DNA from: Saccostrea echinata
Lineage: Eukaryota
Reading direction: 5' to 3'
DNA: 64,000 bases
Assembly (NCBI RefSeq): GCF_033153115.1
Contig: NW_026889758.1
Span: 50,220,001-50,284,000 of the forward strand
Shown: positions 13,965-28,421 of the stretch, in pieces
Numbering within the stretch: position 1 is the stretch's first letter
Layout: each line of letters begins with the position of its first letter
The notes under the pieces: model-generated
What the model saw: the letters and a program-made list of their open reading frames with translations, nothing else
Database searches by the model: none
Told to the model about the DNA's origin: nothing
Translations under genes and position numbers: made by a program

Positions 13965-16900
13965 ATGTCGGAAATAGATAGCAACCCCTTCGCTGATCCA
14001 GAAGCAGCAAATCCGTTTGCGGTAATTTATTCTAATAACATATTGATTAGGCTTAGCTTGAACACGTAATAAACAAAATCATATTTTTAAATCTCTCTTT
14101 TTTTTTAAATATATAAACATATTTGCAACAGTACGTTTGTCCTTTTTTATATCTCACGGATAGTTTAGGTTACTCCAAAAAAGAAAACACTGGGTTCATT
14201 AATCAATTAAACATAATCAGTGGGCGTGCTTGTAGTTTTTAGTTAGTCCTACTGTATTTAATATTTACAGATTAAAGCAACTTTAATCTCTCATTCATAT
14301 TTCATTGAACTACTGTAATTAATTTATGATATATATTTGTGAATTGTCCATTGTTGTGAACTGTTCTTTACAATGATTTAATGTAATGTTTCAATTTGAA
14401 AAAAAAAATATGCACAGGATCCCTCAGTCCAACAAGCAAGAGGTGGTCAGCAAACAGGAACAGGGGCAGTTGATGACTATAATCCATTTGCGGAGGGAAA
14501 CCAGACAAGACCTACAGCAGGGGTGTGTATTATATGATTTCGGACTTTTAAGAATACATGTCTAAAAAAATAAAACAATTTATATACACATCACTAAAAC
14601 TCTTTAGATGAAACAATTATTTGTCTTGTTTCTTCTTACAGTCAATGAGTGATGAACCACTAATAAAAGGATCATATAATTCTTATTCTTCGGTATAAAA
14701 TTGAAACACATGGGTTTTCCTTACTTATTTCTTGACCCATTCCCAATTATTTTTCCCAATTTTTACCATGTTATTCCCAATCAAGTTTCAAGTAAAAATA
14801 CTTATGAGTTAACATTTCCAATTCTGTGGAACTTGGACCCATAATGGGAAAAAGGTCAGGGAAACCCATAAACCCAAACTCACTTTTGTATAGTCTGAAA
14901 AAAAAAATGAAACAGGATATGTCTTTGCTTTTAGAAATCTATTGCAGACTTTGTTGCAAAGACCCATGCACACACACACACACATAAAATTATACCTGAT
15001 GCACAAAATAGCACTTGCACAGTTCTCAAAGTATATAGCTAGTTTCTGAATTAAAAGTCAAACAAGTTGCTTTATTAGTGTATGCATGAGATTTTAATAT
15101 TTTCCCAGCAAACAATACCACCCCCACAACCAGCTCAGACCCAACCAGCAATAATGCAGCCATCAAATGAACCTCCTCCATACTCAGAGAGTTCAGCCCA
15201 GAGAGTTGACACAGCAGACCTACAGAAAAGGCAAGAGGTAATGGCATATGCTTTAAACACTTCAAATGAACCTCCTCCATACTCAGAGGTTTCAGCCCAG
15301 AGAGTTGACACAACAGATCTACAGAAAAGACAAGAGGTAATGGAATATGCTTTAAAATAGATGACCCCTCAAAACCTGGTGATTCATACCAATATGGGTA
15401 AAAAAAGTGTGATAATAAGTGGTCACACATAATTTTAGGAATTTTTACAGTTGAAGAATAAGGTCACACTAAGACTGTTATAGACAATATATTCCTTACA
15501 ATACAATGATTAATCTGTGTTTTTGTCTGTAATAGAGACAGGGTTGCAAATAACATTTAAAACTTAATGGGCCATATGGGCCCCCAACTTAACATGTTCT
15601 ACTAGTGAGTCCACATTAATATTTTGGGGTCCATGAATTTTCTGTCCACGGAGTTAAAAAAAAAATCTCAATCTTTTCATGTCATGATCTCGTCAATGTG
15701 TAATTTGCCTTCTACAATCTTTTATTTTCCTGCAAATTTTGACAACCCTTGTATAAAATTCCATCTTTTCCTTTACTCTGAGACCTCACGTAGTCATAAC
15801 ATTGACACAATTCAGGGTCAAGAAAATGTTTTGTTGGAAAGAAACGGTGAATTTCACTGAAAGTGCCATTTAATAGTAGAATTAAACCGTGGTTGGGTTC
15901 TGGAAAAGTTCCAATAAAATTTTTACTCACCATATGGGCGATAAGATCCTAAAGAGTTTGTCACCCACAGACAAAATTACTCGCATTTTTCAAGTGGGTG
16001 AGTGGTTATTGCAACCCTGAGACATGCAACTTACCATTTTATATCACAATTAAAATGTTTTGTAGGAATTGGAAAAAAAAGCTGCAGAGCTACAAAGGAA
16101 AGAACAGGAGATGAGAAATATGCAGTACAATGGCAAGTATTGACTGTATGAAACTCCTGTTTGCCCAAATACAACATGCCAGTAACTTTTAAGTAGGACT
16201 TGACAAATTACATAGGGCTATTCCAGTTTCCAGGAAAGATGTTATTTTGATTTCATATTGATGAAGGCTTGTTATTATGTTTTTTCTCTGTAAGAGGGCA
16301 AGCTTACAGATTCGGTTCATTCATTATTCATCATGAGGGAGTTTATTCGCTTTAAAGGGTTTTTATCACATCTCAAAATTTTTTGATATGACAAAGTTTA
16401 CATGCTATTAAAATCATATATTTAAAAATCTTTGCTAGAAAATTAATATTTTTGATGTTTCAGTGATTCAAAGTTTGAATTTCTCAATATGCATATTTTG
16501 ATCGTCGATGTTACGTGCCATTGCTCTGACGTCATAGGTGTCAATCCTGGTCAAGCGAAGTACTTATTGTGTATACAAAAGGGCTCATTTGTTGTGTCTA
16601 TTAAACCTGTTAGAAAATAATTAAGTGATAATTGAATAATTGACAGCTTGTAAGGTATAATTTATGGCTTTATGATGCACAAGAAAGGTTTTAGGAAGAA
16701 TTTTTTCCCCACATTTCCTGGACTTGGTCGAGAGATGAAAGGGGGGTCTTTTTTTGCAAATGCGATGGCGATTATCTCCATTCAGAACAAATCATTATAC
16801 ACGATCTATCACGAATTTTTTTCTGTCCTATAAAATATTTTGAGGAAAGATACTTAAAAAAAAATAAGTGACAATCACGCATTTTTTAAAAAGTCGCAGA

Positions 16901-19900
16901 GAATCTAGTAGGAATGTTGTGAACTTCGTAATGGCGTACGGCGCCATTGAAGAAGTGTCATTTCTAGTACATGATATTCACTGCTAGAACAGATAGAAGA
17001 TATACAGGATTTATTTATTTTTGATTAATTAAAATAATAATGAAGGAGAATTTAAAATTCCCATATTTATAAATGTTTACTAAGTTAAACTTTAGTAATT
17101 CGTTCTATTTAGTTGAAGTCCCGAGTTGTCAACAGCTTTGTCTTCGGTGACCTCTCACTAATTGTCGGTATATTTTCTGGTTTTTCTCTCTGGTAGACGT
17201 TCATACCTAAAAGATTGACCGTCCATAACCAAAGAAATATAGTCGATGTCAAAATTTCAACCGGCCATACTGTGTATTCTATTTATTTAGCGTAAAAATC
17301 TATCCAGTATGTTTTTTCTTACAATAAGCTTTACGCGTTCTTTTGACCATTGACACCTATGACGTTTCAGTACCAAGTGACCCCTATCTAATTAGTGGAA
17401 ATTTTTACTCTGAGGACCCTATATAACGGAGGTTTTATCGTCTAATTACGGCCGTTTTCAACATTATTTCATAATTAAACGATAATTATATGTTTCAAGA
17501 ATATATTAGTGTTTCATTTTTAAGAAATTTAGATACGTGATAAAAACCCTTCAAGCCACAAGATAATACCATTTAGCCTTTTAGAAAACCCAATAATTCA
17601 TAGATGTTACAACCCTGTATAAATGAACAGAAACTGCTAATTTGTTACAGGTGCTCTGTATTTGGAAAATAATGCCAATAAAGCTATCTTTAAAAAATGT
17701 TCAGTTTGCCCTCTCCTGACTGACAAAGAATTGCCCAACTCAAACTTCTTAAACCTCTAGGAAATTAATTATATTTAAGGCCCGTCATGAATATGGCCGG
17801 AGCATATAGAGTTTGTCATTTCCATCTTTCCATCCTTCTGTCCTTCCGTTGCGCTTTGCATTTAGCTAAGTTCAAAGCTCAGTGTCAAAGAAACTATTCA
17901 AGATATATTTATCAAACTTCATATGTTGATAGATATTGATGAGAGTTATTCAACTTTTTTTTTACCTTTCTTTTGACCTTAACCTCACTTCTATTTAATT
18001 AGTATTTAGCTCAGTTTTAAAGACACTATTCAAAACAGTGTATTCAAACTTCATATACTGATGCATACTGATGTTAACTTTTCAACTGCTTTAATATTTT
18101 TTGACCTTGACCTTTCCTTTGACCTTGACCTCAATTTTCTTATATTAGTGTTTAGCTCAGTTTTAAATAAACAATTCAAGATACTTTTTTATCCAACTTC
18201 ATATGCTGATACATACTGACGAAAGCTATCAACTGCATCAACATTTTTTGACCTTGATTTTTCCTTTGACCTTGACTTTACCTCTCTTAAATAAGTGTTT
18301 AGCTCAGTTTTAAATAAACTATTCAGGATAGTGTTATCAATCTTCATATGCTGATACAAACTGAAGTTAGCTATTCAACTGCATTAATATTTCTTGACCT
18401 TTACTCTTTCTTTGACCTTGACCTCACTTTTCTCTAATTAGTGTGTAGCTCAGTTTTAAAGAAATATTCAAGATAGTGTTCACAAACTTCATATGATAAT
18501 GCATTCTGATTTTAGCTTTTCAACTGCATCAACATTTTTTTGACCTTGACCTTTCCTTTGATCTTTACCTCCCTTTTCTTAAATTAGTGTTTAGCTCAGT
18601 TTTATATAAATCATTCAAGATATATTTTATCCAACTTCATATGCTGATACATACTGATGGAAGCTATTCAACTGCATCAACATTTTTTGACCTTGACTTT
18701 TCCTTTGACCTTGACCTCATCTTTCTTAAATTAGTGTTTAGCTCAGACAGACATCAAACTTAGTATGCTGGTTATCCCTCCTGAGAAAATTTTGAGGTCA
18801 CAAACTCAGTATCAAACAATATAGACACAAGACTTAGGAAGATATTCTCAGGTCAATTTCTTGAGAACCTTTTTCTTTATAGACATCAGTTTTAGTATAC
18901 TGATACCCTCTAAGAAGTACTTTACCCCTAATGATATTGAGGTCTGATAAAGATCAAACTTAGTATGTTTGCCCTGTCTAGAAGATGACCTATTGTTTTC
19001 ACTATCATTACAGACATTCTAAATTTAAAGTTGTTCCCTTTTTAAAATTACACATTGGGGATGGGGCTTATATGTTTCTCAAACATTTCTTATATTCTTA
19101 ATATCAGCGATTAAACTTTTAGCTTATTTGTGTTTCACTTTTACTTTCTAGAGCGAGCAAACAACTGGCCACCACTTCCAAAGTTTTGTCCTGTTGGACC
19201 CTGTTTCTACCAAGACTTCAGTGTTGATATTCCTATGGAATTCCAGAGAACAGTTAAATTTGTATACTATTTATGGTTATGTAAGTTGAATTTATTGTGT
19301 TTATTTTTAAACATTGAAAAAAAGTTGTTAGTATAAAAGAGATTATTAATGCCTGCCCTGCTAAGGTACATGTACATTCTTTCTCTTTTGACTTTGAAAG
19401 GTAATATTTATTTTGTTCTGTTTCAGTCTATGTAATAGTTCTTTTTCTCAACATCTGGGCCAGTTTGGCGTATTTCATTGCTGATTCTGATGGAGGAGCC
19501 ACTTTCGGCATGTCAATAGTGTGGTTTGTCCTGTTCACTCCTTGTTCATTTATATGTTGGTATAGACCCCTGTACAAAGCATTCAGGTAAATTATGTTTA
19601 CTATTCCAATGTCAGTCACACTTTGTATAAAAAAAAAAACAAAAACAAAAAACACTTTACAGTTTACAGTTTGTGTCTTGTGAGATGGGGAGGGGTATAT
19701 TACCTGACACTAGTTACAAAGCCATTTAGTGATCTATATCTGGTGGGGGAATTATACAATGTGAATGATCAGAAACACATTTTTAAAAGTCTTGTTGCAC
19801 ATGTTTTAAAGAAGAAATATATATGTATGGCATATATTAGGGATGCACAATTTTTTTCGTATACCGGTAAATCATGATATTTTAATTCATGATAAGTATC

Positions 19901-22842
19901 AGGATATGGAGACTTTCATTTGTTATTATAAATTCTGGAAAAAAATCTTTTATTTTTTTTAATTACAATTATCGGAAGATTGAAAAATGTTGTTAAAAAA
20001 AGGCATCCTAACAATGAAATTATTAAGAATTTGGTTTCTTTCTTGTATCCCTCAACCAAATTGATAAAGTTTTGGTAGTTTAAACATCATTAAGTTCCAT
20101 GTGATTTAACTCTGAGCTAATGATCAGATCAACTACATTGTTGTATTGTTTATGGGATGCAAGCATAGAAATGGTTGTAAATGTCTTAATATACATCATC
20201 CTGTGTTCAACCATTTATGGATTGAACTTTGTGACCCCAGTGCTGGGGATGAACCGTTTTCATTGACAATAAAGCCTACTAATTTTTTGTTCAATTTTAT
20301 TTTAAGAAAATTAAAAATATAGATGAAAAAAAAAATATATATAGTTAGGTTTTCATAGCATTATATTTGTAAGAAAAATTATGGAGAGTAGTTTAAATCA
20401 TAATTAAAAATACTTGCAAAAATGTCCTGATATTTATCGTGATATTTTTGAAAAATCATGATATACCGTGATGCAAAATTCTTGATGATACCCATCCCTA
20501 GCATAGATGTACCACATATTGGTTAAGGCATTTATGTGTACATTCAAATCAATTTGTCTTCTAGTATATGATATTACTTGGGCTATATTCCCAAGATGTT
20601 ATATTGTTGACAGCTTTACATGTTTCTACATCATTGTATCTTGCACTGCTGAAATCTGCATACCTTCCCAAATCCATCCCCCTAAAATATCCATTTTTGT
20701 CACAAATCATCCAATTGCAAATAGCAGCACAACACAAAATTTCAAAGCATTAAGTCTATGTATCAGTTGTAAATTGTTATGTTTATGAATTTCAAGATGT
20801 TCACTTTTCCAACTTGTTTTATTTTATTTGAGCTTTGATGCTAGGAAAGCATATTTCTTTAATAGAAACTTGAATATTTTGATATAAAAAGTAAATTTTT
20901 AAAAAAAATTTTAATCAGTGAAAAATATTATCTTTGGAACTACTTTGTTAAGGCTTTCATTCTGTTTTCCAGATCAGACAGTTCATTCAGCTTTTTTGTA
21001 TTTTTCTTCAATTTCTTCTTCCAAGCCATTTGTTGTGTAGTCATGTTAATAGGGATAACAGATTTCACAGTGTAAGTATTCCAATTCACCCAAAGCTCTA
21101 GGTCTTGCACAATTTCTAGAACCACTCCACTCCTCCACTGTGCAGGATCTAGAGAAATTATTGACAAAAACATTGACCTATTGACCTTTGTTTTATTTTC
21201 AGAAGTGACAGCTCCTTCAACTTCTTTGTGTTTTTCTTTATATTTTTTTTCCAATTTATCTGTACGATAATTCAGTGTCTAGGAGTCACAGGCTACACAG
21301 TGTAAGTATGAGTCTATCTAAGTGTAAAACACATGCAGGGTTGTTATACAATTTGAAAATGAGCAAAGTAGCTCTGAAGGTTTGTATTATTTAACATAAG
21401 TGTTGAAAAATTGACTGCAAATTTCTATATGTAGTATTTTAATAATTGTTGCAAATTTTGGAAATGTCTGTTGTCAGGGTTTTAAGATTACCGATAGTGT
21501 TGGCCATAGACTTGATATTGCAGTGTATAGACAAAATCAGTTGACATTTGAACAAGGCAGTCAGAATGAATAAATACTGTTTATGATAAGGCAGAAAACT
21601 GTATAAAATCCTGCATTGGTCTGATTTTTGTCCCTCATTTTCCTTGTTAATTTATATTAAGTGGTAGGATGATTTGTATTTATTAAATAACAATGTATTA
21701 TACTTTGTATTTTATTTCAATAGTACCTTAATATTGTAAGAATGCTGTTAAAAAAGGGAAAACACGAGTTAAGATTTTGGGTTAGGTGACGTAATTTAAA
21801 AAACTACTCCTAGTCTGCGATGATTCAAAAATGAAAACAAAGATTTTGAATCGTGTAAACGTGTATATAAGGTATGAGGCAGTTTTTATTATTTTAAATC
21901 AAAACATTAGTGCCTTTCTAAACTTCATAGAAGTAAGATTAATTTTGACTGCCGTACTAGAAACAGTCATAATATGTTTATTTTTTTGAAAAAAAAATTT
22001 ATTGAGTTTTTCGGGTCTATGTTCCATGTGCCTTACTGCATCCCAGTTAAAACTGAATCTCTGTGTTTGGTCCAGTTAAAACTGAATCTCAGTGATTGGT
22101 CCACTTAAAAGTGAGTATCTGTGATTGGTCCAATTAAAATTGAATCTCAGTGATTGGTCCAATTAAAACTGAATCTCAGCAATTGGTACAGATGTTATTG
22201 ATTTTTATTTTATGATAATCATACTTTAATGCCGATTTTGATTTGCTAATACCTGATTTCAATTTCAGTGGCATCATCAATGGCCTCACCATGACTGGAT
22301 ACAAAAACAGTGGGAAGGGGGTCAGCCACGTAGGTGTGGCACTGGTCATGATATTTGTTGGCCTGATGTTTGGCCTTCTTGCCTTGTTAGATTTTATCAT
22401 GTTGGTCAAGGTATAGCATCCCAAATCATATGTTTTCTGTTATTTGCATGTTCAAATTATTTTGCTTGGCATTTTGTGTTTTCAAATACTGCATGTGGGG
22501 GTTTGCCTTATAACATTCAGAAGAAATAAGCCTCTACAGCACTCTCCATATAAAACCACTTGTATTTAAGACCCTCTAATGAATATACATATGTACCTAT
22601 CATGCATATTCAGCTTTGAATTTCTCCATCAAAAAAATTCCAAGCTATTTTATTTTTAGATTTTTTAATCTATATGTACATAAGGGGCATTCCATGTAAG
22701 GTTAACTTAATACAGAGATCAACTTATCGTAGCCCGATTAACCCACAATACTATAAATGTATTTATATTTAGTGTGCACAAAGTTTAATGGAAATTGAAT
22801 TTTCAGCAGATTAGTGTAGATTTAATTTAGCACATTTCTGAT

Positions 22843-22884
<42 letters not shown>

Positions 22885-25800
22885 TGACGTAGCAATGTTC
22901 TAGTACTTGATTTAACAGAAGTTGCTTTCTGCCAAAGGTGCTGAATAGAATACACAGCAAAATGTAATACTTTTACAGTAATCAACCCCACTCGAATTCT
23001 TTTGTGGGTACCTTTCATATTACATTACTGAGAAAAAAAAAAATAACACCATGGTTAATTCTGGTTTAAGTTGACCCAAAATAAGGTTGTGAATTAGCTT
23101 ATGATAATATCATATAAACCCAGATTTACATGAGCTGACCCTTTTTAACAATGTAGCATGATCTGCCCTAAAATGATATATTTGTCCTTAAATATGTCAC
23201 ACAAGTGTTATAATAAAGCAATTGATTACTTTTAAATCTTTTATCCTTTTAAAGTAAGAGGCTAGATATTCTTTTATAGATCAGTTTTCCAGATGAAGTG
23301 TTGATGAGTTTTCAGAATTTTTTTGTCTTTTTAGCTCACCTAAACTAAAGGATCAAGAGAGCTTTCTGATCACAAAGTGTCCAGTGTCTATCTGTCCATT
23401 GTATTTTGTCTGTAAACCTCTCTCATTTTCAACTTCTTTTTAAGAGACAATGGACCCATTTCAACCAATCTTGCCACAAAGGATCCATGTGAGAACCCCT
23501 TCTCACATGGATCTTGAAAGAAGTTTTGGGAAAGAAGTTTTGCTGTTCATTTGAACTAACATGAATCCCCATTCAAGAAGAGATGATTAAGAAATAAAAA
23601 TTTTGAGGGTCTTCTTCACGAGAAGCTAGGATAGAGCCATTTTAGTCGGTTAAAGTTATATAAAGCCATGTGTAGGAAAAATGTCAAGAAAATGGGGTCA
23701 ATTACTGATACTCATATTGTTACACACATGTACAAGCATCGTCATGCAGGGTGGGGCCTCAATAAGAGGTCAAAATTTAATATGAAATATTTAAGAGAAA
23801 AAAATTAAAAGCTTCTCAAGAGGTAGTCAAATAGTCAAGCATCATAATGTCATGTAGATGCATATACATGTATATACTACATGTAATTGTTATCTAGCGA
23901 CAAGCACTGCATCATGATTGGGAAGCAAAGTTTTATATAGAAACATGTAGACATTCACAAGGGGAAAATAAGTTGTAATTTGTAAAAATAACAACAAGCC
24001 TCAATATACTGTAAATTCAAATGCTCATATTTGGAGATCACAAAAAGGGATATCATTTAGCTGCATATTTTTATCAGGAAGTTAATGTTGACTCAGGTGA
24101 GCATTGTGGCCTGTGAACCTTTCGTTTTCAAGTTATCGAGGGTTAAATGAAGTTATTCTTTTTACTCTTTTTTTTTTAAGAATAAATTTCAGTAAATGTT
24201 TAAGTAATAAATGTCTGCAAGACATTGCTTGTCTAGTTTAACTGCCAAATTCATTCAAGATAGAGAAGTTGTTAACCTGTTTTAATAAAAACATAAAGCA
24301 AGGTAGATATTTTCATTATTTTCCTGGTAGGTAATATCCCTGCATGTCTGCACATATACCATTATTATTACGTTGTGGGTAGAAGGGTTGAAGGTCGACA
24401 GGAGTGGTTTTAGTCTTCGTCCCATATTTTTTGCTTCCCACTGCCATTGGATGTTGCCATTGAATGTAATCAGGTTGCCAGCAAATCAATCAAATGAGGT
24501 CATCTGATTTGACAACCACAGAGCCAATCAGATTAAAGATTGAAAAAAATCTCAAAAAGAGTCCAGGTTGTTGGCATCAGATGGAATCATTCGGTGAAGT
24601 GTAGCTTAGTTTGTGTTTGTACATGTCTTGATTGCATACTTTGTAGGGGATGGATTAATTCTCTGTCGACTATTGGTAAAAGTACTGGAGCTGGAGCTTT
24701 CATGCTCTTCATCTCCCTCTTCTTTTCAATCTGTGCTGTGCTTATGATAGTCATGTTACTTAAGGTTTGTATATAGAGAACAAATTTATCATTGTGCTAC
24801 ATGTAATGTAGAAGCTAATATATCCTTTAGAAATGTCACTTTGTAGAAGATAGCTAATCCTGTGGGTTGAATAATTTGATCTATATGTTTAACTCATCAA
24901 ATAACAATTTGAAATTTAAAAAAGACAGATTATCATACAATGCTTAAACTTTGTTCTGTTATATTTTCCACTTTTCTTTTTTTTTTTTACTAACTCTTAA
25001 TTTGCAAAGATGCTTATATATCTCTACATTTCTTAAAATGCATGCAAAATGCATACAAGTTAATAGTATTTTTATTTTTGTATTGAAATAAAAATTGGTT
25101 CTGTATTGATTTTCTCCATTGAGTATTTCTGTATTTCATGTTTCTAAGATAATGGATTTTTAGTTCACCTCAACGAAGTTGGGGGAGCTTATGTAATACC
25201 CTCTGCATCTGCGTCCATGGTTAAAAGTTTTTGGAGCAGATTTCTTTTCAAGTACTTCTATGCCCTATATCAATCAGAGGTGCATTAGGATGCCTCTAGT
25301 GTTTCATTGTACCAGTCAAGGTTTCAGATGCTGCAATTTCAGCTAAAGAATAACCAGTTTAATGTTTTTAGAGCAGGTTAGAGTTTTTGGAGCAGATCTC
25401 GTTTCAAAGTAACTATAATTCCTATGTTGACCAAACTTGTGTGGATGATACATCTAAGGATGCACACTACCAGGCTTGCTTCGGATATTGGATCTGAACT
25501 ACATTTTTCGGATGAGTGACCAGGTTAAAGTTTTTGGAGCAGGTCCATTGCCAAGAAGCTATAAGGCCTATCTGAACCAAACTTGCATGGATGATGCATT
25601 AAGGGACGGACACTTTCAAACTTGCTTCGGATGCTGGATTTGACCAACATTTTCTGGATGAGTGACTAGTTTTAAGTTTTTAGATAAGTCCATTCCCAAG
25701 TAACTGCAAGTCCTATCAGACCAAAATTGCGTAAATGTTGCATCTAGGGATGCACACTACTAGATTATTAGTAGGACTTTGCCTTACTTAAAGATAACAT

Positions 25801-26031
25801 TCGTTGAGGTAATCTCTGATTGTTTTTTCCTGTTTTCAGTACAGGAGATATTGTTTCTTCTTTCAGGTGCACAAAATCTATAGGAGCACAGGGGCCAGTT
25901 TTGACAAAGCTAAGCAGGAATTCTCCACTGGTGTTATGAAGAATGAGACTGTTCAGGGTGTAGCTGCTAATGCGGCTCAGGGCGCTGTCAAAGGCATGGC
26001 TAGTCAGTACGGATCCAATAACAAGTACTGA
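13965..26031 (+). CDS. SCAMP1: Secretory carrier-associated membrane protein (SCAMP1-like), complete, with alternative exons
   Basis: Exons 13965-14021 ([19 protein letters not shown]), 14418-14522 (third NPF), 15109-15237, 16066-16132 (coiled coil, GC donor), 19152-19280 ([25 protein letters not shown]), 19427-19586 (TM1-TM2, E-peptide [11 protein letters not shown]), 20973-21071 or 21203-21301 (SDSSF + TM3), 22269-22410 or 24647-24764 (TM4), 25867-26031 ([26 protein letters not shown]...stop). Confidence 0.95.
15163..15357 (+). repeat. 99-bp tandem duplication of the 3' half of SCAMP exon 3, including its splice donor
   Basis: TCAAATGAACCTCCTCCATACTCAGAG...CAAGAG|GTAATGG occurs twice with period 99; donors at 15238 and 15337. 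Confidence 0.9.
15539..16019. mobile_element. MITE with CAGGGTTGCAA termini
   Basis: CAGGGTTGCAAATAAC ... GTTATTGCAACCCTG; flanks AGAGA/AGACA (imperfect 5-bp TSD). Confidence 0.7.
16356..17550. mobile_element. Non-autonomous DNA transposon with TTAA-like target (Kolobok-like)
   Basis: TIR AGGGTTTTTATCAC / GTGATAAAAACCCT; flanks TTAA and TCAA; internal inverted pair ACGTCATAGGTGTCAAT (~16529) / ATTGACACCTATGACGT (~17349). Confidence 0.75.
17775..19092 (+). mobile_element. Helentron-like element with an internal array of ~146-bp repeats (~6 copies)
   Basis: TTTAGCTCAGT-anchored unit recurs at ~18005, 18151, 18298, 18445, 18590 and 18738, with TGACCTTGACC motifs; 5' (TCCA/TCCG/TCTG) microsatellite. 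Confidence 0.7.
19838..20500. mobile_element. hAT-type MITE
   Basis: TAGGGATG ... CATCCCTA termini with 8-bp TSD GCATATAT/GCATAGAT (one mismatch). Confidence 0.8.
20973..21071 (+). CDS. SCAMP1: SCAMP alternative exon 7a (TM3)
   Basis: ttttccag|A TCA GAC AGT...ACA GT|gtaagt; 99 nt; [32 protein letters not shown]. Confidence 0.85.
21203..21301 (+). CDS. SCAMP1: SCAMP alternative exon 7b (TM3)
   Basis: attttcag|A AGT GAC AGC...ACA GT|gtaagt; 99 nt; [32 protein letters not shown]. Confidence 0.88.
22041..22187. repeat. 30-bp minisatellite, ~5 copies
   Basis: Unit TCCA(G/A)TTAAAACTGAATCTCAGTGATTGG, ending about 80 bp before exon 8a. Confidence 0.85.
22269..22410 (+). CDS. SCAMP1: SCAMP alternative exon 8a (loop + TM4)
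   Basis: aatttcag|T GGC ATC ATC AAT...GTC AAG|gtatag; [47 protein letters not shown]. Confidence 0.85.
23328..24128 (+). mobile_element. Helentron-like (HINE) element, degenerate
   Basis: Starts TTTTTAGCTCACCT and ends CTCAGGTGAGC-ATTGTGGCCTGTGAACCTTTCGTT; same terminal architecture as 44709-46676. Confidence 0.75.
24647..24764 (+). CDS. SCAMP1: SCAMP alternative exon 8b (loop + TM4)
   Basis: ctttgtag|G GGA TGG ATT AAT...CTT AAG|gtttgt; [39 protein letters not shown]. Confidence 0.88.
25156..25770 (+). mobile_element. Helentron-like element fragment with ~150-bp tandem units
   Basis: TTTTTAGTTCACCTCAACGAAGTTGGGGGAGCTT start; repeated AAAGTTTTTGGAGCAG / ACCAAACTTGCATGGATG units; same family as 42236-43815. 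Confidence 0.7.
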
Positions 26032-28421
26032 AAAAACCACATATGCCCTCGCCAAGGCCAATATTGAAATTGTAGGAAATTACATGTAGAGGTGTCATCG
26101 GAAGACTTATTCAATTTATATGAACTTAATGTGGTACTGAAGTATTTTAAGTTATGAAGTTACAATTATTTATATTATCATTTATTGTTGAATGGCAAAG
26201 ACTTGATGTAGTCACATGTTTTGAATGTCCAAGTCATTTTTAGTAGCAGCCTGTGTTGATGTAAGGGAATTTCACCACATTCTTGTTTAGATATCGGGAG
26301 AAAGCCATGTAATGGATGTTGCTTATGCTTGCCCAGATGTAGAGAGAGAGAGAATGGAGATTAGCTTTAGTTTTATCATAACCTTTACATTTTTTTTAAA
26401 AAAAGAGAATTCCAGCACAGGTGTATAATTCATTGATATTGTCATGATTGGGTATTTAATTTTGTTTAAAGGAATTCCATTTCAAGCAAATGATCATTGA
26501 TGTAAAACTTTGAAATATCAAGATTGCTTTATTTGTATCATTGAACAGAGAATAATTTCATCATGCTATTTGCCAGCTTGATTTTATATCAGAATTAGTG
26601 TAACATAAGGTGTGCCTATCCCTATTTTTGCCAGCTTGTGAAAACAGTGCTTCATTCCCCTACAAATGCATTGGTCTGTAAAATCGACATCGGGAAGTCC
26701 AGTAGTAATGTAACAATTTGTATGTACATGTTTGTTCTGGATTTTGAGTAATGGATGAGTACTGTATTTGATGTTTTAGGTAGAGGTAATCTTCGTAAAT
26801 AGTTTATCATATAATTATTGATACATGTATAATTTTGGGGTGGGATTTAAGTCTTAGCATAGTCAAGAAGGTGTGCACTCAACATTTTTGAGAAATTCTG
26901 GTTTCTCTTAGTCATATTTTATCAATTTTATGTATATATATAAGATATCATGAAAGGCACTATAACTATATGAAGTTTATAGTTTTAAAAAGGCAAGCTT
27001 TTTCACGATATATGTTTTTCAAATTATGAAGGTCCAGTGATTGCCAAACTTTTCCTCCAATCCAATTCCTAATTGTGATTCAATGAAATTTGGACAATAA
27101 GATGTATCTGTGTACCTGTGTTTGTCATTCTGACTGTGTTTGATAGATCTTTGCCTGTGTTACAGATTTTTCCCAGCTCTTGTTGTGAAGGGAAGACTTC
27201 AACAATCATATCATCAGATTCTGTACATAATGTATTTGTTATACTTTGTTAATGATATTTCTTTTTTTTTCATCTCTTCTGTGTTGTACAACTTATTAAT
27301 TTCTATTTTCTTACTCCACAAAACAAAGCAATGTTAAAATTGATTCATACAGCATGTATGTTACGAATTACTGATGAAGATAATTAATTAAGCATTTGTT
27401 GTTTGTTGGTCACAAAATACTATTGTTTAATTTCACTGATTTATCACTTAAAAGTTTTTAATTTTGCACTAATTTTGATCCATCACTAAAGACAAGTTTT
27501 AAAGAAATGAAGTGCGTATTTGTGTAGAAATTATGACTTGGAATGTGTTGATTTTTTGTGCACGGTCTCTCTGACCATTTGGTGTTTAAATGTTACGTTC
27601 ATTAATCCCAAGTCACTAGTAAGTGCTATGTAGTTTGTTACAAATTATATTTACATCAATCTATTAAAGTTTAAAATGTGTCTAGAATTCTTTAAATATA
27701 CCAAGATAATGTCAATCCAAACACATTCCAGAAGGGATATATCGAAATGAAACATGCTTAGTATAAGTGATGGAAAAATTAAATGATTATTAGTCACTGT
27801 CATCAGTAGTTGCATGTAATTGTTGTCGTTTTGTGGGTTAAAACCTGTAAAAGAATTGCGTACACTTTCTGTTACTAAGAATAAATATATTTAAAGCTGC
27901 AGTTTTTTTTTATTGATTTATGGATGTTTTCAACCACTTTTTTTGGGGGGGGGGGGGGTATTGATATCGGTAGATCTTGCAGTATAAGACAAAACAAGTC
28001 ACCATTGCAAACACACAGGAAAAGAAGTGTTTGTTTATTAGTTTTTCATGAATCAGATACAGAAACTAATTTTGTAAATATCTTTAACAAAAGTCCAGAG
28101 GTGTCCCAAAGTAGCATTTTCGTCTGCATACTCATCTGAATTAGCATGTCGATAAGTATTGTGTAATTTATGGACAGAAGTGACCAAGGCATTGCCCCAA
28201 GCTTAGGCTCTTATCTGATGATAACGTTTAACAAAAGGCATTTACATGTCCAAAAATCACACGATAGAGTGTACAACAAACAGCCTAATCCTATATATTA
28301 CATTACACCTAACAAGAGAAGATAAAAAAAAGTCGCTAGGTAAAATGAGGTCGAAAGGCAGACGACAGTTTGCATCAAGTTGCCCGCAGAGCAGAAGTAA
28401 AACTGTTTTATCGAAATAAAC

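Follow-up and report, generated by a model that had tools for sequence, protein, structure and literature searches.

The 64,000-nucleotide stretch of Saccostrea echinata DNA analysed here (NCBI RefSeq assembly GCF_033153115.1, contig NW_026889758.1, positions 50,220,001 to 50,284,000 of the forward strand; hereafter, the window) contains a gene for a secretory carrier-associated membrane protein (SCAMP) in which two consecutive exon positions are each occupied by a cluster of tandem-duplicated alternative exons. The first cluster (exons 7a and 7b) encodes the third transmembrane segment (TM3), and the second (exons 8a and 8b) encodes the lumenal loop and the fourth transmembrane segment (TM4). 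SCAMPs form a conserved family of tetraspan proteins on the carriers of the secretory and endocytic pathways, with four membrane helices, N-terminal NPF repeats, and a conserved stretch after TM2 as their hallmarks, and their membrane core is poorly understood. The explanation we favor, and consider highly probable, is that the single oyster SCAMP offers two choices between paired exons, one for TM3 and the other for the loop and TM4. Two adjacent exon positions would each have been duplicated in tandem, splicing would take one exon 7 and one exon 8, and one gene would give rise to up to four proteins that are alike except in the second membrane hairpin. RefSeq already contains these exons, in all four combinations, for S. 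echinata and Crassostrea gigas, and hence they are not new data, contrary to the impression given by an initial annotation of the window, which knew of no description. The RefSeq isoforms include exactly these exons, with peptides identical to those of the window, but are automatic predictions that come without comment on exon duplication, exclusivity, age, or function.

Exons 7a, 7b, 8a, and 8b (Table 1) each have an AG acceptor, a GT donor, and an open in-frame translation, and the coordinates, lengths, phases, open frames, and translated motifs listed for them in the initial annotation were all confirmed on the sequence. Exon 7a runs from ttttccag/A to CACAGT/gtaagtat and 7b from ttattttcag/A to CACAGT/gtaagtat, with the same donor context; the borders are caatttcag/T and GTCAAG/gtatag for 8a, and ctttgtag/G and CTTAAG/gtttgt for 8b. 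Either exon 7 completes the split codon of exon 6 with one base and ends with two spare bases, and either exon 8, with a length of 1 modulo 3, takes up one base at its start and ends at a codon boundary. The copies are separated by 131 nt in the first cluster and by 2236 nt in the second, with no coding sequence between them, and a tblastn search with 22 SCAMP proteins revealed no further or decayed copies of exons 7 or 8 in the introns (all else had E > 0.3 and was of low complexity).

Within each cluster, the two copies are related. Exons 7a and 7b match the same region of the Pfam profile PF04144 (positions 91-120, E 1.4e-5, and 91-121, E 3.8e-6, respectively) and are identical at 62 of 96 nucleotides, with 24, 23, and 15 matches among the 32 first, second, and third codon positions, the third positions being near random. 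By the Nei-Gojobori method, the proportion of differences at synonymous sites (pS) is 0.82 (14.75 differences over 18 sites, saturated) and that at nonsynonymous sites (pN) is 0.25 (19.25 over 78). The homology and heavy synonymous divergence noted in the initial annotation are thus borne out, and this divergence is what an old duplication leaves behind when the two copies are both retained as coding sequence; with a pN of 0.25 against a pS of 0.82, 7a is under purifying selection relative to 7b. Exon 8b matches PF04144 at profile positions 125-164 (E 2.8e-4). Two profiles of exon-8 peptides, with columns cut from two 52-protein alignments (8a-like, or A-type, and 8b-like, or B-type), were aligned by hhalign with a probability of 98.1% (E 7.7e-14, 39 columns), compared with less than 1% for all controls, namely, the TM1, TM2, and exon-7 segments of the same proteins. 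The resemblance between 8a and 8b therefore stems from descent, rather than from common hydrophobicity.

The use of these exons was traced in assembled sequencing reads. Six runs were found, none of them recorded as RNA (the label is ‘RNA? (a guess)’), and five contained 0.35-0.42 of the sampled words; the contigs of runs X1, X3, X4, and X6, which carry three organism labels and belong to two studies, were aligned to positions 20100-26099. In all four runs, GT..AG joints connect 7b to 8a (21301 to 22269) and to 8b (21301 to 24647), and connect both 8a (22410) and 8b (24764) to exon 9 (25867), joints that can only derive from spliced RNA. At these joints, the contigs have sides of 30 letters, the mark of a branch in the de Bruijn graph, so that both the 8a path and the 8b path must be present in each sample. 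Exons 8a and 8b are a proven alternative pair, both spliced directly to exon 9. No joint between 8a and 8b is among the 15 that were listed (63 others were not listed). Within each run, the contigs with 8a and those with 8b have comparable word depths (11.5 vs 15-24, 42-51 vs 44-48, 147 vs 121-205, and 231 vs 390-532), contig depth being a poor measure. In run X6, which bears a different organism label, a loose contig end at 21198 is the end of exon 6 joined to 7b; translated by hand, the differences of 8a from the window in this run give the S. cucullata peptide, and of the eight differences listed for 8b, seven are at the third position of a codon. Of the junctions that the initial annotation proposed to count, those on either side of exon 8 (7b to 8a, 7b to 8b, 8a to 9, and 8b to 9) were recovered in every run, and the listed joints include none with 7a.

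The protein databases add the exon 7 choice. The S. echinata entries, named ‘secretory carrier-associated membrane protein 1-like isoform X1-X8’, include 7b+8a (X1), 7a+8a (X2), 7b+8b (X3), and 7a+8b (X4), that is, all of the up to four isoforms anticipated in the initial annotation. The same four combinations are modelled in S. cucullata, Magallana gigas, Ostrea edulis, and the older set for C. virginica, and three of the four are among the isoforms retrieved for C. angulata, where 7b+8a is the one not among them; one C. gigas accession is at version.1 and bears an old ‘PREDICTED’ label. Across S. echinata, S. cucullata, M. gigas, C. angulata, O. edulis, and C. virginica, the 7a peptide differs, by eye, by at most five changes, and in all six species it is accompanied by a 7b form. 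Among the oyster SCAMPs translated from Logan contigs, 14 are 7b+8b, one is 7b+8a, two are 7a+8b, and two contain 7b with no exon 8 detected. The two 7a+8b proteins (P0300 on two contigs, P0301 on one, all Crassostrea-like) have variable regions identical to that of C. gigas; because the full 342-aa protein is encoded on contigs of no more than 1402 and 1531 nt, these contigs must be spliced RNA. Exon 7a is a real, although minor, exon, at least in Crassostrea. In one C. virginica RefSeq isoform, X6, a portion of 8a is followed in frame by 8b, suggesting an internal donor in 8a; this isoform and O. edulis X9 and X10 (together, proteins P0410, P0336, and P0343) may be minor products or model artefacts.

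Several observations weigh against the favored explanation. On its own, exon 8a has no PF04144 match at E ≤ 10; the literature searched contains no test of a functional difference between the isoforms; the RefSeq isoforms are automatic (Gnomon) models, possibly combining exons combinatorially; and the contigs, with only part of their joints listed, show presence, not absence. In addition, some database entries depart from strict exclusivity: O. edulis RefSeq isoforms X9 and X10 have no exon 7, and a GenBank model from Pinctada (P0287) contains both exon 7 copies in tandem. As for 7a itself, the depth over it (bin 20900-21099) is 0 in runs X1, X3, and X4 and 0.14 in X6, and it is untouched by any listed joint in the four runs, in which intron pieces near it were assembled at depth 2-4. 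The use of 7a in these samples is at most very low. These data, together with the ratio of two 7a+8b to 14 7b+8b proteins among the Logan contigs, would fit a scenario in which only the exon 8 pair works as a switch, 7a is an unused relic in this oyster, and its presence in RefSeq isoforms is a product of combinatorial prediction. We consider this scenario very unlikely, given that 7a combines a pN of 0.25 with a saturated pS, has both splice sites intact with the donor context of 7b, retains its peptide in six oyster species, and occurs in full-length proteins on contigs that are only possible as spliced RNA. More probably, 7a is functional and replaces 7b at a low level or under particular conditions.

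The two clusters differ in the way a wrong combination would be prevented. When 8b is read in the frame that follows 8a, a stop is encountered at codon 4, as expected from the frameshift predicted in the initial annotation, and when both copies are skipped, exon 9 runs into a stop after 23 codons. Because joint inclusion and joint skipping both give early stops, exon 8 exclusivity is enforced at least by the reading frame, as in other cases of frame-enforced exclusivity, and nonsense-mediated decay would remove the wrong products. The exclusivity of exon 7 cannot come from the frame, because both 7a and 7b have lengths divisible by 3, and the frame is kept when both are included or both are skipped; it would need competition between splice sites or an effect of the short 131-nt intron, in which a 16-bp stem is predicted. 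This intron folds at -27.8 kcal/mol (z -3.45; 1 of 200 shuffled sequences folds as well), and the stem is separated from the 7a donor by 24 nt and from the 7b acceptor by 48 nt, the latter stretch containing three UUGAC-like motifs. By shortening the effective distance from donor to branch point, the stem could hinder 7a-to-7b splicing, and the close spacing of the copies around an intron with a stable stem resembles the arrangement in sterically enforced exclusivity.

Exclusivity through competing RNA structures is treated in PMC6071210. Unlike systems under docking-selector control, in which a single docking sequence can pair with a selector beside each alternative exon, the SCAMP gene yielded no docking-selector pair in an inverted-repeat scan of 19587-25866: among 75 inverted pairs, the 25 longest are almost all A/T-rich, none was accepted as a long-range docking/selector pairing, and the stem in the 7a-7b intron is the sole stable local element. 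By eye, positions 21119-21131 in the loop of this stem can pair with 24400-24412, approximately 235 nt upstream of 8b, with 9 perfect base pairs, or about 13 with one G-U; by a rough estimate, a 9-mer match of this kind is at about chance level.

The absence of a frame constraint on exon 7 leaves room for a choice looser than mutually exclusive, in which inclusion or skipping of both copies would produce proteins with five or three helices. The two 99-nt exons permit every combination, and the O. edulis isoforms without exon 7 and the Pinctada model with both copies are what such looseness would produce. No joint from 21071 to 21203, which would connect 7a to 7b, is among those listed, 7a is without depth, the Pinctada entry is an unreviewed ‘hypothetical protein’, and an odd number of helices would be expected to misplace the conserved C-terminal tail across the membrane; on balance, a loose choice seems unlikely. 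The mutual exclusivity proposed in the initial annotation, therefore, stands for exon 8, on the evidence of the contigs and the frame; for exon 7, with 7b alone in the four runs, strict exclusivity is putative.

For the protein, the favored explanation implies that the two choices bear on the second hairpin alone. In AlphaFold2 (AF2) models of isoforms X7 (7b+8a) and X8 (7b+8b), the predicted local distance difference test (pLDDT) values of the TM region are about 77-96 (block means), and the helices extend over residues 148-181, 183/185-217, 220-242, and 262/270-296/303, with exon 7 corresponding to helix 220-242. With 8a (X7), the loop forms a helix of 13 residues (251-263), followed by a 6-residue linker and TM4 at 270-303; with 8b (X8), the loop helix has 8 residues (251-258), the linker 3, and TM4 spans 262-296. 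Judging from these differences between the modelled helices, the exon 8 swap is predicted to alter the length of the lumenal loop and the entire surface of TM4. The isoforms would then differ in the contacts made by the TM3-TM4 hairpin and its lumenal loop, be it with other SCAMP subunits, with cargo transporters, or with a particular type of membrane.

The phyletic spread of the two clusters is different, with the exon 7 pair seen in a few bivalves and the exon 8 pair reaching across phyla. Extending the search to other lophotrochozoans, as suggested in the initial annotation, recovered both exon 7 forms in six oysters and the exon 8 pair across molluscs. For exon 7, in addition to the oysters, there is a tandem pair in one Pinctada model and two more-similar forms in Mytilus, and a single form was found in scallops (4 species, 13 isoforms), Mya, Ruditapes, Dreissena, Haliotis, and amphioxus; among the species examined, the TM3 pair was seen only in oysters, one pearl oyster, and mussels. 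For exon 8, the A form lacks W at the second residue and has a median length of 42 aa, and the B form begins with GW and has a median of 39 aa. The two forms alternate within species in bivalves, gastropods, and Octopus, in the chelicerates Limulus and Centruroides, in the crustaceans Oratosquilla, Palaemon, and Macrobrachium (two A and one B), in two species of Branchiostoma, and in the sea urchin Diadema. The A and B forms occur in more than 25 species of five phyla; Mytilus has three exon 8 forms, and Mya and Ruditapes have four. The TM4 pair is not oyster-specific and seems to predate the molluscs by far.

When 62 exon-8 peptides are placed in a tree, the 22 A exons (from molluscs, arthropods, amphioxus, and the sea urchin), along with 6 unlabelled rows, all fall on one side of a single branch, which has a support of 98/91 and recurs in 100% of the 200 bootstrap trees. 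In no species does A cluster with its own B, and Hydra and four vertebrate rows lie on the B side. This tree was built from 43 columns (with a ‘few columns’ warning), five long branches were flagged and one row had an odd composition, and the A and B labels were set by us from within-species isoform pairs. Hidden Markov models (HMMs) built from one phylum were also applied to the exons of another: arthropod HMMs were right for 11 of 12 mollusc A exons and for 8 of 12 mollusc B exons, mollusc HMMs assigned arthropod A exons correctly in 3 of 6, and the amphioxus A and B were ranked correctly by both sets, the outcome being clear for chelicerates, amphioxus, and mollusc A exons and ambiguous for crustaceans. 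The order of the copies is also shared: in the read-through models of Amphibalanus (P0177) and Mya (P0333), A precedes B, as in the window.

Reciprocal loss seems to have followed in the two groups that are studied most. All 76 readable matches in the search with the fly protein, from insects and two Daphnia, are of the non-GW, A-like type (18 more lack a motif recognizable by the pattern), and all 13 readable vertebrate SCAMPs, each of them named as a SCAMP1 or SCAMP2 type, have the GW exon (6 of the 19 were unreadable by the pattern). The suggestion in the initial annotation that an invertebrate gene diversifies by splicing where vertebrates use five paralogues is, accordingly, only loosely apt: the A type is without a vertebrate counterpart in this sample. 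We lean towards the view that the TM4 choice is an ancestral bilaterian switch, such that the common ancestor of protostomes and deuterostomes would have possessed one SCAMP in which an A exon preceded a B exon, of which insects fixed A and vertebrates B; bivalves would later have added layers, namely, the TM3 pair in oysters and mussels and, in Mytilus, Mya, and Ruditapes, an exon 8 position with three or four copies. Conversely, the A/B pairs could have arisen independently in each phylum and become alike by convergence, the oyster pair being a mollusc invention. The shortness of the peptides, the few columns and long branches of the tree, the mixed HMM scores (3 of 6 and 8 of 12), and our own assignment of labels all leave some room for convergence, which we nevertheless regard as quite unlikely, in view of the single well-supported branch that holds every A exon, the failure of any A/B pair to cluster within a species, the 11 of 12 mollusc A exons recognized by arthropod HMMs and the correct ranking of amphioxus under both sets, and the A-before-B order in the read-through models.

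The remainder of the gene conforms to the SCAMP family. The protein has three NPF motifs and the conserved stretch that follows TM2, the translation of exon 6 retrieved 349 SCAMP-like proteins from a representative library at E ≤ 0.001, and PF04144 is present in all related full-length proteins; the exons were searched singly, and full-length comparisons were made through RefSeq proteins. By tblastn on the window, S. echinata isoforms X1, X3, and X4 are 100% identical at every exon. In the whole-genome search, exons 6, 5, and 7b score 61.8, 49.5, and 27.5 bits against PF04144 (cut-off 27), and this is the one detectable SCAMP locus in the genome, in line with the single gene assumed in the initial annotation; the sole other match (28.7 bits) was rejected as a second locus, because it is a poly-F run encoded by a T/A tract that contains stops.

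Table 1. Features of the SCAMP gene of S. echinata, in window coordinates.
Feature	Position	Strand	Remarks
SCAMP coding region, ATG to TGA	13966..26031	+	nine exon positions and a cassette exon; from sequence reading, tblastn, and Pfam
Exon 1	14022 (end), 13966 (start)	+	
Exon 2	14418-14522	+	
Cassette exon, 17 codons, between exons 2 and 3	14642-14692	+	
Exon 3	about 15109-15238	+	second donor at 15337
Exon 4	end 16132	+	followed by a GC donor
Exon 5	19152-19280	+	
Exon 6, constitutive, TM2 and conserved stretch after TM2	19427..19586	+	final 2 bases are part of a codon
Exon 7a, alternative TM3 exon, 99 nt	20973..21071	+	peptide identical in S. echinata RefSeq X2 and X4
Predicted 16-bp stem in the 7a-7b intron	21096..21154	+	from the fold of 21072-21202
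Exon 7b, TM3 exon, 99 nt	21203..21301	+	used in 4 of 4 runs examined
Exon 8a, A-type loop and TM4, 142 nt	22269..22410	+	TM3-TM4 loop 8 residues longer
Exon 8b, B-type (GW...) loop and TM4, 118 nt	24647..24764	+	joints to 7b and 9 in 4 of 4 runs
Exon 9, coding part, shared acceptor of 8a and 8b	25867..26031	+	stop at 26029-26031

Further variation is apparent outside the two clusters. The final 99 nt of exon 3, with the donor and the first intron bases, are part of a near-identical tandem duplication (15166-15345) that creates a second GT donor at about 15338; its use adds 33 in-frame residues, an insert that is found in the 392-400 aa RefSeq isoforms of S. echinata and S. cucullata, compared with at most 368 aa for the SCAMP isoforms of Crassostrea and Ostrea. 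The 17-codon cassette is included in the long RefSeq isoforms and not in those of 342 aa. The intron after exon 4 apparently starts with GC (G/GCAAGT, 16132-16138) rather than GT, and the N-E-R across the junction in RefSeq agrees with this assignment. A 29-nt unit is repeated five times in tandem at 22043-22187 (87% matches), ending 82 nt upstream of the 8a acceptor; the unit starts with CCAAT and ends with ATTGG, so that a hairpin is possible, and the array may be a minisatellite or may serve in splicing control. In all four runs, the summed contig depth in two intron stretches is very high, up to about 59,000 at 25500-25699 and about 2,400 at 23300-23499, and the intron stretch 25100-25800 contains many back-joints and a 146-nt tandem repeat (2.7 copies, 25374-25760). 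The stretches 25100-25800 and 23300-23499 look like members of a dispersed, transcribed repeat family rather than a part of SCAMP.

Pairs of mutually exclusive exons that arose by tandem exon duplication are known in other membrane proteins, such as Nav (exons 5N/5A), CaV1.2 (exons 8/8a), and SLC25A3 (exons 3A/3B). The SCAMP exons resemble known pairs of this kind in that neighboring, homologous exons with matching phases swap a TM segment, with one copy per mRNA for exon 8 and probably also for exon 7, and in their apparently ancient origin, with purifying selection on both copies. The differences are that two clusters follow directly on each other in SCAMP, a small tetraspan trafficking protein, that its copies appear to have been lost reciprocally (flies keep A and vertebrates keep B, in our samples), and that this family is a host of such exons in none of the papers searched. 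The literature search recovered no paper describing a choice between TM exons for any SCAMP; it did not extend to supplements, where catalogues of mutually exclusive exons sit, and these could name SCAMP in some species. Mutually exclusive exons in general are treated in PMC8373072, PMC9741552, and PMC5740500. The accessible text of a study of Drosophila Scamp, which is a single gene, does not discuss alternative TM exons (PMC4235465), a silence that fits A-only flies. The vertebrate SCAMP1-5 and Drosophila Scamp belong to the same family and share the four-helix core, but neither flies nor vertebrates show the pair, because the exon 8 copies seem to have been lost reciprocally, with B-type TM4 alone in the readable vertebrate sequences and A-like alone in the insect ones.

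The most interesting part of these findings is that the TM4 switch appears to be as old as the bilaterians and to have been lost reciprocally in flies and vertebrates, the main model groups. An ancient switch that swaps exactly TM3, or the loop and TM4, would be a natural experiment that marks surfaces important for the choice of partners or for sorting, and flies with A only and vertebrates with B only would explain the silence of the searched literature on this switch. If the bilaterian reading is true, each of the two best-studied animal groups has been used to study half of the ancestral protein, which suggests that results obtained in one model group may not transfer to the other half of the ancestral SCAMP repertoire. 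Should the A and B forms serve different vesicle populations or partners, they would represent a conserved and unexplored layer of the regulation of membrane traffic. For the biology of oysters, the practical gain is smaller, given that the isoforms are already in RefSeq.

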